The position numbers and the translations under genes were made by a program. From the NCBI RefSeq assembly GCF_964204645.1, contig NC_134034.1, positions 3,303,814 through 3,367,813 of the forward strand: a DNA stretch of 64,000 nucleotides, read 5' to 3'. The notes beneath the pieces were generated by a model that worked only from the letters and a program-made list of their open reading frames with translations, did no database searches and was not told the origin of the DNA. Shown in pieces: positions 31,149 through 49,522 of the stretch (the stretch's first letter is position 1; the number at the start of each line of letters is the position of its first letter). The stretch comes from Tubulanus polymorphus (lineage: Eukaryota > Animalia > Nemertea).

Positions 31149-31742
31149 ACCTTCTCAAGAGTTAGTCTTCATACACCTGCACAGTCTGAGAAACTGTGTC
31201 ACTTCATGTAACTCCCCCGTCTGAGTTCGTGGCCCACCTTGTTACGCCGGTCGGCAAATACACCGAGATGGAATCGGCGGCAGCAGCCACAGACAATGAA
31301 AACACAACTCGTGGCATTTCGTGATACTTTACGTATCCTATTATTCGAGTACTAAACCGTACAACAAGTTGTCATGGAATGAACAGTCGACAGGTACCTG
31401 ATCATATCGCGAATCAGACTGACCAGAGTACCACCTAGCGGCCAAAACACATTACAATAGGTTAAACTTTATTCGCATATAAAATTACAAACCTTTATTT
31501 ACATTTATATCTACGGAGTCCTAATGGATGAATGAAATGGTGTAATATGAATATTTCTTTTTCGTGGGAACGAAATATAGTCGTTTCGTAGATTTTTTCG
31601 ACGATTATGTTTTTCACGGGAACGAAATAACCTTTTCGTTGGAAAGAAATGATTTTCGCGGGAACGAAAAGATTTTCGTAGGAACGAAAAGATTATTTCG
31701 TGCTACGTTTCGGGGAAAGTATAAATCTTTTCACCACGTCAC

Positions 31743-32354
31743 TGTTGTGGAGATAGTTAGTAGTTTAGATAAATGTACGAAAGCTGGAGTTCATGGCCAG
31801 TGTTGTTATCGCCAGACAACCTGCGTTGATGCGTACGTCATACATAAACATAAATAGAGCTTATATAAATAAACAAGTCTGGAACTGACGTATGTGTCTA
31901 CGTAGGTAAACCAAATATGGCGCGGCCATGAGCTCTGGTGAGTGCAAAAGGGTATTTATAGATAATTGTGACGTGTGCAGATACGTCATCACCCATACAT
32001 GGGTGGGAGGAATGTTGTGACGTATGAATACGTCACAATCCATGAATTCCAAGCCATGTGTGGAAGAGGGCCTGCACACGTTACTAAAGATAGAATAATA
32101 TAAAAGGGTTTAAGAAAGCTTTAGAGAGAGGTTGGAGAGAAGAGGTTTTAGGGAGAGCTCCGGGGAATGATCTTGTATACATCTGGTAAGAGAAAATAAA
32201 AGAATAGATAACTTAAGAAATTGTTAAGTTATATCCGGGAGCCTTGTAAGAAAGTCAAGACCAAGGACTGTGATCCGGCCCAAGAGAGTGTCCCTCGCAA
32301 CATCGTCGAGAGAAATCATTACCACAACACTGTTACATATACGCGACCACAACA
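31743..32354 (+). mobile_element. Solo LTR (612 bp), Gypsy-like 4-bp TSD
   Basis: TGTTGTGG...CCACAACA flanked by TCAC at 31739-31742 and 32355-32358. Internal TATAAAA near 32099 and AATAAA near 32194. Confidence 0.8.
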
Positions 32355-32884
32355 TCACCTTCACGACTCAGTACACATACCTCTTTTTACGCGCATACTT
32401 ATATCCTAATAGCCCCCTTAATCGCACAACGCTAAACTCTTAGGCAACGTCACGTATTTATTTTCTCAGAAAAGTCAACTTTTCAAGAGTGACGGCTCGG
32501 TATCCGACGTAGGCCTACTTTTTGTATCTGTACCTAGATACTGGGGTCTAACATATTTTAAACACCGGGCCCCTGTTTCGGTGTCCAAGTTTCCGCATCC
32601 ATGTCAGTGCGCCCCGCACCCCGACCTGGGGCGCTGCGGGAAGATTTTTGGGGATGTATGTTTTTCCGGACGCTCCCTCAAACGAAGTTTCAAAAACGAA
32701 AAGGAAATACTCATCGAATACGTAGCTCTTATTGTTCGTTTTGCGAGAAAGACACCGGCGATGACGAGCCAATAAGGAACTGAGATGCAACATATTCAAC
32801 ATTGTCCAATGTATCTACGAGCAATTATCTGAACATGTTCAGATAATTGCTCGTAGATATATTGTCCAATGTATAAACGATATT

Positions 32885-33125
32885 CTAAAGAGGCACAGGT
32901 TCCGTTGATTGTTTACTCGGGTCGTCGCCGCCATTTTCCTGTAGTTTCGCTCGTCTGTAGAGCAATACCGAATGTTCTTTAAGCGCTACAAATGACGCTA
33001 CGGCTAGTCCGATAATCAACGTGAAAAACACACCAGACATTTCGAAAAACGTCAACGGTTCAGTCTTCGATATTTCGTTTGACCAACCGTCGCGAACGTT
33101 ACATGGAAACTGACGTTTCATATAC
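32885..33125 (-). pseudogene. Duplicated terminal exon (M4 and C-tail) of the iGluR-like gene, ORF intact
   Basis: Matches 45832-46072 with 3 substitutions (2 synonymous, one Ile>Lys). The polypyrimidine-CAG acceptor is retained. No upstream exons on this strand were found. Confidence 0.85.
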
Positions 33126-33734
33126 CTGAAAAAAAGAATGAAAGGACTGAAGTCGAACCGTTAGTTACTAAAAATCGAATTCAACGATTGTGACAAAATT
33201 CTTTTCCCTGATCCTGAACCTAATTCCACAGTTCGGAAACAAGATTGCTTGAGTTTTTATACTCATACGAAATGAACAAAAATAGATTGAACTAGAGTGA
33301 TTGGTTTTTCTTTAGAAAAGAACATACGTAATGTTACGTGTATCGAAACCGGTTTTTGCGTTAGACATAACGCACCATTCACCTGGAAGTGCCGCGTGTT
33401 ACTCGCCGAACCAGCTGTTTGCGTTGTTTGCGCCGTTCCAATACGCAACATAAAACATAGGTAGATATCCTCAAAACATAGCGCCGTTAGTCGTCTTTTT
33501 TGATGCTGGTTCCTATCGGATACACGGATATTCTTATCAAGGATAAGACGGTGGTTAAAACTGTGTGTAAACGATTAGCGATTCTGAGGTAAGAAATAGC
33601 ACAATTTCGCCTTTAAATTACAGCGTGAATCATACGTAAACTGTTATACCATCGTCTGCGTGATATGTATGATTTTTTAATCGATACAAAATCAATTCTA
33701 CGACCTGATTATGAATTTCAAGAATTCCCTTATC

Positions 33735-33991
33735 CCCCTCCCTCTATCTCTCTCTCTCTGTCTCATTCTCTCTCTTCCATTCATCGTCCCTTCATAATCT
33801 CTCTCCCTCTCCCTCTCCCTCTCCCTCTCCCTCTCCCTCTCCCTCTCCCTCCCCTCCCCCTCCCCCTCCCCTCCCCTCCCCCTCCCCCTCCCCTCCCCTC
33901 CCCTCCCTCTCCCTCTCTCCCTCTCCCTCTCCCTCCCTCCCTCCCTCCCTCTCTCCCTCCCTCCCTCCCTCCCTCCCTCTCTCTCTCTCTC
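33735..33991. repeat. Polypyrimidine/polypurine tract (CCCTCT/CCCT)n
   Basis: Read directly; it generates the spurious Pro-rich and ER-rich ORFs. Confidence 0.95.
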
Positions 33992-46690: not shown

Positions 46691-47075
46691 TAAGAGCTAC
46701 GTATTCGATGTGTATTTCCTTTTCTTTTTTGTAACTTCGTTTTAGGGAGCGTCCGGAAAAACGTACAACCCCAAAAATCACCGAATCTTCCCGCAACGCC
46801 CCAGGTCGAGGTGCTGGGCGCACTGACATGGATGCGGATACTTGGACGCCGAAACAGGGGCCTGGTGTTTAAAATATGTTAGATCCCAGTATCTAGGTAC
46901 AGATACGAAAATTAGGCCTACGTCGGATACCGAGCCGTCACTCTTGAAAAGTTGACTTTTCTGGGAAAATAAATACGTGACGTTGCCTAAGAGTTTAGCG
47001 TTGTGCGATTAAGGGGGCTATTAGGATATAAGTATGCGCGCAATAAGAGGTATGTGTACTGAGTCTTGAAGGTGA

Positions 47076-47691
47076 TGTTGTGGTCGCGTATATGTAATAG
47101 TGTTGTGGTAATGATTTCTCTCGACGATGTTGACGAGGAGGGACACTCTCTTGGGCCGGATCACAGTCCTTGGTCTTGACTTTCTTACTAGGCTCCCGGA
47201 TGTAACTTAACAATTTCTTAAGTTATCTATTCGTTTATTTTCTCTTACCAGATGTATACAAGATCATTCCCCGTAGCTCTCCCTAAAACCTCTTCTCTCC
47301 AGCCTCTCTCTAAAGCTTTCTTAAACCCTTTTATATTATTTTATATTTATTAACGTGTGCAGGCCCTCTTCCACACATGGCCTGGAATTCATGGATTGTG
47401 ACGTATTCATACGTCACAACATTTTTTCCCATCCATGTATGGTGATGACGTATCTGCACACGTCACAATTATCTATAAATACCCTTTTGCACTCACCAGA
47501 TTTCATGGCCGCGCCATATTAGGTTTACATACGTAGAGACATACGTCAGTTCCAGACTTGTTTACTTGTATAACTTCTATTTATGTTTATGTATGACGTA
47601 CGCATCAACGCAGGTTGTCTGGCAATAACAACACTGGCCATGAACTCCAGCTTCCGTACATTTATCTAAACTACTAACTATCTCCACAACA
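47076..47691 (-). mobile_element. Solo LTR copy inside the right arm
   Basis: TGTTGTGG...CCACAACA with GTGA flanks; same insertion as 31743-32354. Confidence 0.8.
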
Positions 47692-48108
47692 GTGACGTGG
47701 TGAAAAGATTTATACTTTCCTCGAAACATAGTTCGTTCCCACGAAATAATCTTTTCGTTCCTACGTAAAATCTTTTCGTTCCCGCGAAAATCATTTCTTT
47801 CCAACGAAAAGGTTATTTCGTTCCCATGAAAAACAATTCATTCCGTCGAAAAAATCTACGAAACGACTATATTTCGTTCCCACGAAAAAGAAATATTCAT
47901 ATTACACCATTTCATTCATCCATTAGGACTCCGTAGATATAGATGTAAATAAAGGTTTTTAATTTTATATGCGAATAAAGTTTAACCCATTGTAATGTGT
48001 ATTGGCCGCTAGGTGGTACTCTAGCCAGTCTGATTCGCGATATGATCTGGACGACCAGGTACTGTCGATTGTTCATTCCATGACGACTTGTTGTACGGTT
48101 TAGTACTC

Positions 48109-48142
<34 letters not shown>

Positions 48143-49522
48143 GTAAAGTATCGCGAAATGCCACGAGTTGTGTTTTCATTGTCTGTGGCTGCTGCCACCG
48201 ATTCCATCTCGGTGTATTTGCCGACCGGCGTAACAAGGTGGGCCACGATCTCAGACGGCGGGAGAGTTACATGAAGTGACACAGTTTCTCAGACTGTGCA
48301 GGTATGAAAGACTGACTCTTGAGAAGGTCGACACAGATTCAGATGTGGAATCAGATTCTGAGACTGAGGAGGGCCGGAACCCGGGAATCCGATGTAGACT
48401 GTTATAGGAAGAGCGAAGGGCAGGGCGCGGCAATTGATGAAAAAGTTCGAGATATAAAAAAGTCGTTCCCATGGCAACGCCATTGATTTTTATTTATGGA
48501 AAACGTGGATTTTTATAACGTTTAGCTACGAGAATATCCAAATCAGGCAGGGCATCCATCTCTTAACGACATGTTAATCAAGTCTGGAAAATGGCAAAAG
48601 CGGGATGCCGGATCTTCACAATAACCTCCTTGAGATGGATATTTTGTACTTCTCCTGCCGCGACACGGATATTCCCCGCTTTGGTTCTTCACGGCCCGTC
48701 AAGGGGATTCAAGCTCACTTTAGTAAACCCACCGTTCCCCGAAGTGAACTCGGTTGAAGTTTGTCCGGTTCAGCGATACTGGATCGCCCCAGTCAAGCGA
48801 GCTGTTTGTACCGTTCAAATGTGTTTTTTTTCTCTCCTGTCATTTGTCAGTGTCTTTTTGTGTTTATATTTTATTGCCATGTCTGTCCCGTGTAAATTAT
48901 ACGGACACAATCTATAAATTTGGAATTGAATTGAATTGGTTTGGATACGGATGCCTTATTTGGATCTTCTCGGAGCCACCCATTTCTCAGGCAATCAATA
49001 AACGATTTTTATTTCCTCTCCTCCGTAGCCATAAAATACATTTTCATCCGGATTATCCGGATTCATATCCGGACGTGATGGAGTCGGGCCCTATTGGTTA
49101 TACATTATCATCAACCGCTAAAGTCAGAAAAGGTAAAAAAGGAAATATTCATAATTCACCGCCGGCCACACACCGCGAGGCCCGAGCCAGTGACGTGGAG
49201 CCTGGCTATAGTATATAATTTGTGTCACAGGGACCTGACTATACTATATAAAAAGACTTTTAAAAAAGTCTTTTTATATATAGAACCTTGTACCTAGGAT
49301 ACTGGGGTCAAATTTTTTTTTGTCAGGTCCCTGTGATTTGTTTGTATATCGTCACATATGCCTCTATCTTAGACTTAGTCTGATGAATACCAGTCGTTGT
49401 TACCGGTTCCTATTTGCCCTATCTGAGATTGTGTTTATTTTTCTTAGGTCCGTTATTAACTAATTTTCGTACGAGCGCGATGAGTTTACCACAGAGCCAA
49501 TCAACTGTCCACCAGGGGGCGA

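Follow-up and report, generated by a model that had tools for sequence, protein, structure and literature searches.

A glutamate receptor gene of Tubulanus polymorphus lies between inverted copies of its own last exon, probably the scar of one past break-and-join event

We analyzed a 64,000-nucleotide stretch of DNA from Tubulanus polymorphus (C10:3303814-3367813 of an assembly of 268 Mb in 77 contigs; hereafter the window) and found that a gene for an ionotropic glutamate receptor (iGluR) is enclosed by two long inverted repeats, or arms, each of which carries the last exon of that gene. We believe that the arms are probably an inverted segmental duplication, fairly young, in which the gene's 3' end was copied in one past break-and-join event, and that they persist as a passive scar. 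The copied stretch would comprise the final 174 nt of intron 10, the exon that encodes M4, and about 1.7 kb of downstream DNA. The structure is of a known kind; what sets it apart is that the last exon of the enclosed gene is itself what has been duplicated.

The inverted repeat is real and far beyond chance. A repeat search and a separate full-length alignment of the arms with MAFFT both gave a single continuous inverted repeat with sharp ends (Table 1), in which the repeat search resolved seven collinear, gap-free inverted blocks of 123-349 nt with complementarity of 96-99%. Each arm contains the last 173-174 nt of intron 10, the splice acceptor, the 241-nt last exon, and about 1.7 kb of downstream DNA. 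These results agree with an earlier note on this DNA, which had described the arms as reverse complements that each hold an acceptor, a terminal exon and downstream DNA. Its coordinates for the right arm and for the left arm's end at 33298 also stand; the left arm starts at 31148 and not, as it had said, at 31149.

The arm sequence is found nowhere else in the genome. In a search of the 268 Mb, it occurred at only these two places, save for an embedded old repeat that has many copies; this repeat is in both arms and therefore predates the duplication. Self-comparison of 103 kb of C10 and 36.5 kb of contig C3 yielded inverted matches of at least 250 bp of three kinds only: the arms, a pair of miniature inverted-repeat transposable elements (MITEs), and paralogous exons on opposite strands. 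Thus, the arms are the sole long inverted repeat within the 103 kb of C10 that is neither a transposable element nor a pair of paralogs. In the 36.5 kb of C3, no such inverted repeat was found around the two tandem paralogs located there, and no inverted copy of the terminal exon was found near any other close paralog among those checked. Neither around the locus nor between the two halves of the spacer did we find a palindrome that was larger or older.

Table 1. Positions of the arms, the receptor exons and the inserted or private segments, numbered from the first letter of the window.
Feature	Positions	Length	Strand	Description
Left arm	31148-33298	2151 bp		Downstream DNA, terminal-exon copy and last 173 nt of intron 10, antisense to the gene
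Right arm	45658-48329	2672 bp		Continuous with the gene
Spacer	33299-45657	12,359 bp		Upstream region, exons 1-10 and most of intron 10
Older interspersed repeat, in both arms	31741-32355	~600 bp		At least 40 genomic copies, 75-93% identity
iGluR gene body	35913-44913		+	From exon-by-exon tblastn against paralogs; boundaries approximate
Exon 1	35913-36011		+	Signal peptide, begins MGMFRYSSIWVVLFSSGFLMTATSA; ATG at 35913
Exons 2-5	37229-37426, 38482-38781, 39743-39991, 40563-40655		+	Approximate
Exons 6-9	41331-41555, 41834-41995, 42646-42759, 43566-43742		+	Approximate
Exon 10	44102-44913		+	End of S1, M1-M3, S2; donor GTAAGT at 44914, read from the sequence
Exon 11, terminal exon predicted to be in use	45832-46072	241 nt	+	Includes stop; M4 with ALIEH, and C-terminal tail
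Left terminal-exon copy, probable orphan	32885-33125	241 nt	-	Includes stop; M4 with ALKEH; acceptor CAG at 33128-33126
MITE private to right arm	46226-46690	465 bp		TAA target-site duplication; ~43-bp terminal inverted repeats
Palindromic segment private to left arm	32799-32860	62 nt		Starts 25 nt past the stop codon
Segment private to right arm	46097-46155	59 nt		Single-copy; unrelated to, and opposite, the left-arm palindrome

The geometry of the locus is that predicted for an inversion by staggered breaks. The observed order (flank, inverted copy of the tail, gene body, tail copy, flank) is what such breaks would leave. The earlier note had pointed out that staggered-break inversions leave inverted duplications, and this explanation, which fits the locus, is the one that we rank first. 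In the Drosophila melanogaster group, inverted duplicate copies of genes or of other unique sequence accompany 17 of 29 fixed inversions; 12 inversions have only one breakpoint region duplicated, and most of the copies decay (Ranz et al. 2007, PMC1885836).

In the form that we favor, the gene would have undergone a micro-inversion. One end of the segment would have been cut by two single-strand nicks spaced 2.15 kb apart and the other end by a blunt break; the overhangs would then have been filled in and the segment re-joined in reverse by end joining, such that the staggered stretch would be duplicated, in inverted orientation, at both ends of the segment. Before the inversion the gene would have been on the minus strand and would have used the present left exon, and the joins created by the event would be those at the left arm's inner boundary and the right arm's outer boundary. 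The same end product would result from a partial duplication in inverted orientation, with no inversion of the gene, by some other break-and-join route or by template switching. At present, exon 10 would be spliced to the right-hand exon, leaving the left exon an orphan. Occasional homologous inversion between the arms would be possible in principle and harmless to the gene; we saw no sign that it occurs regularly or is put to use.

The ends of the arms point to breakage and end joining. All four ends are blunt and lie in single-copy DNA. We found no target-site duplication at the outer ends of the arms and no microhomology at the inner and outer arm junctions. A second short inverted duplication, shared by the left end of the spacer and the outer flank on the right, was likewise not found. 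None of the eight largest non-receptor open reading frames of the spacer and arms matched a Pfam family, and hence no recombinase or transposase was found there. Based on the blunt single-copy ends, the lack of a target-site duplication, and the lack of a transposase or recombinase, we favor breakage and end joining over transposition or a site-specific system.

Judged by its sequence, the enclosed gene is an ionotropic glutamate receptor gene of the AMPA/kainate-like type, with M1-M3 and their gate followed by S2 and M4. We located the exons by translating the plus-strand frames of the spacer and then comparing them exon by exon with paralogs, using each exon singly. All ten of the coding exons that the earlier note had placed in the 12.4-kb spacer were recovered on the plus strand. 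The 271-codon open frame at 44102-44914 matches Lig_chan (PF00060, E = 1e-17) and aligns with the PDB entries for GluK2 (residues 481-762) and GluA2 (E = 1e-19), and exon 10 contains a channel gate motif of the SYTANLAAF type, SAAYTANMTAFL. M4, in the last exon, ends in VALIE, which we take to resemble the LVALIEF at the end of the M4 of AMPA receptors. NCBI names one of the paralogs 'putative glutamate receptor'. The N-terminal exons, scanned singly, gave no Pfam matches.

Either copy of the last exon is compatible with exon 10. The acceptor, TTTTTTTCAG|G, is identical at the two copies, and both copies begin with a G that supplies the last base of the AAG codon split after exon 10 (phase 2). 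The junction between exons 10 and 11 (...VEDK|YMKRQF...) matches that of an annotated paralog fragment, P0001 (...VEDK|YTTRQF...). A protein word-index search with the Lys-variant exon gave no matches, and a search with exon 10 gave one paralog fragment only.

On its left side, the spacer consists of the 5' flank of the gene itself. A plus-strand element at 34163-34225 is common to the spacer and to the upstream region of a paralog, which identifies this part of the spacer as DNA that belongs upstream of the gene. Translation and comparison with paralogs revealed no receptor exons on the minus strand of the spacer. A cluster of near-palindromic MITEs, with copies of about 415 bp at 35390-35800 and 36186-36600, is just upstream of exon 1 and in intron 1. 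This MITE has 406 candidate copies in the genome, with 90-95% identity.

The arms have diverged independently and without visible homogenization. Six gap-free non-coding blocks differ at 53 of 1404 nt (3.8%), and there are 13 gap events outside the block that bears the exon, one of them being the MITE of the right arm. The longest perfect tracts are 106, 99 and 98 bp, and the two longest are within the exon block. The three perfect runs of at least 98 nt compare with about one expected, given approximately 90 mismatches between the arms, and this excess is not significant. No mosaic of homogenized blocks is visible in the alignment. The earlier note had counted, by hand, 3 differences in 241 nt of exon and about 9 in 174 nt of the adjacent intron. 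The alignment bears this out, with 3 of 241 in the exon and 8 mismatches plus one indel across the 173-174 nt of intron.

Each arm also contains sequence that is private to it. The left arm has an empty site at the position of the MITE in the right arm, indicating that the MITE inserted after the duplication. This family has 380 candidate copies across all of the large contigs, and at least 40 of those scored are 95-99% identical. A 3-bp target-site duplication of TAA/TTA is typical of PIF/Harbinger-type elements, and the family has the appearance of a recently or currently active one of that type. The 62-nt segment of the left arm is a near-perfect palindrome with a perfect 22-bp stem (DNA hairpin of -29 kcal/mol, z = -10.9). 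It is flanked by 14-nt direct repeats and takes the place of the 59 nt of unique sequence in the right arm. Its core of about 45 nt is dispersed, with at least 19 other loci at 79-93% identity (for example, C7:1704087-1704136 and C2:7645012-7645052). The palindrome may be a tiny mobile hairpin element or a footprint of repair.

We regard the left exon as a probable orphan, out of use and beginning to drift. It is antisense to the gene and 2.6 kb upstream of the start codon. The translations of the two exon copies differ at a single residue, Lys in the left copy (ALKEH) and Ile in the right copy (ALIEH). The three nucleotide differences are at 33032, 32979 and 32960 in the left copy, which correspond to 45925, 45978 and 45997 in the right copy; the second of these is the Lys/Ile site. 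We polarized the differences with seven paralogous copies of the terminal exon. All seven have Ile or Val at this position, within the conserved VAL(I/V)E of M4, which is VALIE in most of the seven, indicating that the Lys is derived, and it is this replacement of a kept residue that makes use of the left exon doubtful. The right copy has one derived change, a synonymous CTC to CTG, and the third differing site is ambiguous. A radical change in the copy that would not be spliced and a silent one in the copy that would be spliced fit a relaxation of constraint in the left copy; these are very small numbers.

Members of this receptor family have had their 3' ends copied more than once in the region, and we count this in favor of an inverted duplication of the 3' end. 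There are eight close paralogs, including tandem pairs, and partial copies of the tail are present near the locus. One remnant of the terminal exon (L019, C10:3276956-3277094) has an internal deletion and no splice acceptor, and two neighboring tail copies (L007 and L008) are interrupted by an in-frame stop within the C-terminal tail. Like the left exon, the two paralogous copies nearest to the locus are on the minus strand. These lie at a distance of 55-60 kb, are decayed copies of the tail, and are not the closest relatives (79-81%, versus 85-87% for distant paralogs), so that the match in orientation weighs little.

Several observations weigh against a one-time, passive duplication. The ancestral orientation, the fixation of the structure, and the non-use of the left exon are all things that we infer. 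The frame of the left exon is still open and its acceptor intact, as would be expected at this age of an unused copy too. When the DNA downstream of both arms was compared with that of six paralogs, the only shared piece was 30004-30116. This piece is a short interspersed repeat with more than 2000 candidate copies, and thus says nothing about synteny or about the ancestral outer junction; otherwise, the DNA downstream of the paralogs has diverged too far for such a comparison. Lastly, the exon is less diverged than its flanks, which mildly favors either gene conversion or constraint that acts on both copies, by a likelihood ratio of about 2-3 over constraint on one copy.

The deficit of differences in the exon is real but weak. 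The copies differ at 1.2% of exon positions compared to 3.8% in the clean non-coding blocks (Fisher p = 0.052), and for three or fewer differences under neutrality, the binomial probability is 0.018. If the right copy alone were constrained, 5.7-6.6 differences would be expected, and the probability of three or fewer would be 0.10-0.18. If both copies were constrained, 2.3-4.1 would be expected. Constraint on the right copy only would also explain the lower divergence of the exon. The density of CpG is 0.10 in the exon and 0.05 in the flanks, which predicts the opposite of a deficit and does not explain it. The earlier note had taken the difference between exon and intron as a hint of constraint or conversion; the deficit is there, and constraint on one copy is not rejected.

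We considered whether the spacer is inverted repeatedly by non-allelic homologous recombination (NAHR) between the arms, either flipping in the germline or with both orientations segregating in the population. The two terminal exons would then serve at different times or in different haplotypes, with Ile or Lys at the cytoplasmic end of the M4 helix of the resulting subunits, and with different 3' untranslated regions (UTRs). A crossover anywhere in the arms would invert the spacer and leave the gene complete. Because the two exon copies have the same acceptor and the same first G to complete the AAG codon, an inversion through the shared intron would leave a complete gene, now joined to the other exon and to a 3' region unlike the present one. 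The earlier note had reasoned in the same way for an intronic crossover, and the identical acceptors and phases support its reasoning. Since the gene would survive in either orientation, an inversion would be almost neutral and might be retained as a polymorphism. The gene is indeed flanked by inverted arms of 2.15 kb, both exon copies are intact, and the exon block, which contains the two longest perfect tracts, is better conserved than any other part of the arms. In addition, human inversions mediated by similar or larger inverted repeats recur, and some of them swap exons harmlessly (PMC3961182).

We nevertheless consider recurrent inversion unlikely. The inverted repeats are there, but long near-perfect tracts and signs of exchange between them were not found. 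The arms differ by 3.8% and many indels, the MITE and the 62-nt replacement are each confined to one arm, there is no homogenized mosaic, and the perfect runs do not exceed expectation. Breakpoints of human inversions, in contrast, are in tracts of very high identity, for example, 782 bp at 99.9% (PMC3961182). Exchange of the Ile and Lys exons would also need a crossover within the innermost ~320 nt of the 2.15-kb arm, and the Lys that would be exchanged is derived and non-conservative at a conserved position. Furthermore, the close paralogs checked lack such a repeat (the C3 pair) or an inverted copy of the terminal exon.

A second possibility is that the locus is the remnant of an inverted duplication of the whole gene, with two genes once head to head and the body of the left one later deleted. 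The family does expand by local duplication, as indicated by the eight close paralogs, the tandem pairs and the nearby tail copies. We regard this origin as very unlikely. It needs two events, there are no relics of minus-strand receptor exons in 33299-35850, and the inner boundary of the arm is sharp. Moreover, the stretch that would once have held the left gene contains the element at 34163-34225 shared with a paralog's upstream region, and is thus the upstream DNA of the present gene.

A true two-state cassette is more improbable still. Homologous inversion, whether recurrent in the germline and maintained as a balanced polymorphism or occurring somatically, would, according to where the crossover fell, re-pair the gene with the Ile or the Lys exon and a different 3' UTR, and selection that keeps both exon copies would explain the roughly threefold lower divergence of the exon. 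The earlier note had proposed a flip-flop cassette of this kind. The geometry that it described is present, and we obtained no positive support for flipping: the arms are 3.8% diverged, the perfect tracts are no longer than 106 bp, no recombinase was found, and the Lys is derived.

We give even less credence to an artefact of assembly, in which the second arm would be a mis-joined haplotype or a chimeric fold-back. A divergence of about 4% between the arms is within the allelic range known in marine invertebrates. However, the window contains no gap or N (N content of 0), and the 12.4-kb unique spacer is unlike fold-back artefacts, which have zero spacer. The arms could be spanned by single long reads if the assembly is based on long reads, as its 77 contigs for 268 Mb might suggest, and even a heterozygous simple inversion would give no reads for the junction 33298|33299. 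A genome search did not find an alternative copy of the locus on unplaced contigs.

Two other types of element were rejected. A transposon of the foldback, Polinton or Pack-MULE type, with its long terminal inverted repeats, does not fit arms that are single-copy and have no target-site duplication, and no transposase was found among the eight largest non-receptor open reading frames. For a site-specific invertible switch (Hin/Gin/Cin, shufflon or FLP type), no recombinase was found among those eight frames of the spacer and arms, and the flanking genes encode a G-protein-coupled receptor (GPCR) and a C2H2 zinc-finger protein.

The neighboring genes both have related copies on C10. The left neighbor is a single-exon rhodopsin-type GPCR gene on the minus strand (28248-29510, 421 codons; PF00001, E = 1e-12), and its family has many copies on the same contig that are approximately 75% identical. 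The right neighbor is a single-exon C2H2 zinc-finger gene on the plus strand (49523-51955, 810 codons). Its product has an acidic tail rich in Ser, Thr, Asp and Glu, and its finger region has many diverged paralogous copies along C10. Between the GPCR gene and the left arm, a repeat of about 190 bp (29937-30121) has more than 2200 candidate copies (86-91%) and is also found downstream of two receptor paralogs, where it might be misread as a sign of conserved synteny.

If the arms are the scar of a break-and-join inversion, then the locus is a clean and small spiralian example of the inverted duplication that such an event leaves, a mechanism documented mostly in Drosophila, and it shows how the 3' ends of a locally expanding family of glutamate receptors become copied. 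It is also a natural test of whether short inverted repeats that are about 4% diverged can still mediate inversion in a marine invertebrate. Its importance would be much greater if both orientations, and both variants of the exon, were used; we found no evidence that they are.

Programmed inversions that swap the C-terminal ends of coding sequences are known from the G segment of phage Mu (Gin) and the shufflon of plasmid R64 (Rci). These systems have a dedicated site-specific recombinase, short specific sites, and variable ends that lie inside the invertible segment. The T. polymorphus locus resembles them as an idea, in that an inversion would decide which C-terminal piece joins a constant gene body. 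It differs from them in that no recombinase was found, the arms are long, diverged duplicates, and what would flip is the gene body.

Among the polymorphic human inversions mediated by inverted repeats (the HsInv set), a comparable arrangement is that of HsInv0241, in which the first exons of AQP12A and AQP12B are exchanged and a unique segment lies between inverted low-copy repeats that bear exons (Aguado et al. 2014, PMC3961182). As in the HsInv set, inversion here would leave the coding capacity intact and exchange near-identical exons. In the human cases, both orientations have been seen, recurrence has been shown, and the breakpoints are in long tracts of nearly 100% identity (PMC3961182). 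In T. polymorphus, by contrast, we know of only one orientation, and the arms, which are about 96% identical, share no perfect tract longer than 106 bp.

The inverted duplications of Drosophila described by Ranz et al. (2007, PMC1885836) are similar to the arms in several ways: the sequence was ancestrally unique and often a gene fragment, it is duplicated in inverted orientation at the two ends of a segment, often from one breakpoint region only, the copies decay by substitutions and small indels, and the junctions are outside transposable elements. Those were fixed, large chromosomal inversions, whereas here an inversion is proposed from the geometry of the locus and the segment is only 12.4 kb with one gene. 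Unlike the Drosophila cases, the duplicated piece in T. polymorphus is the last exon of the enclosed gene itself, such that either copy could complete the gene.

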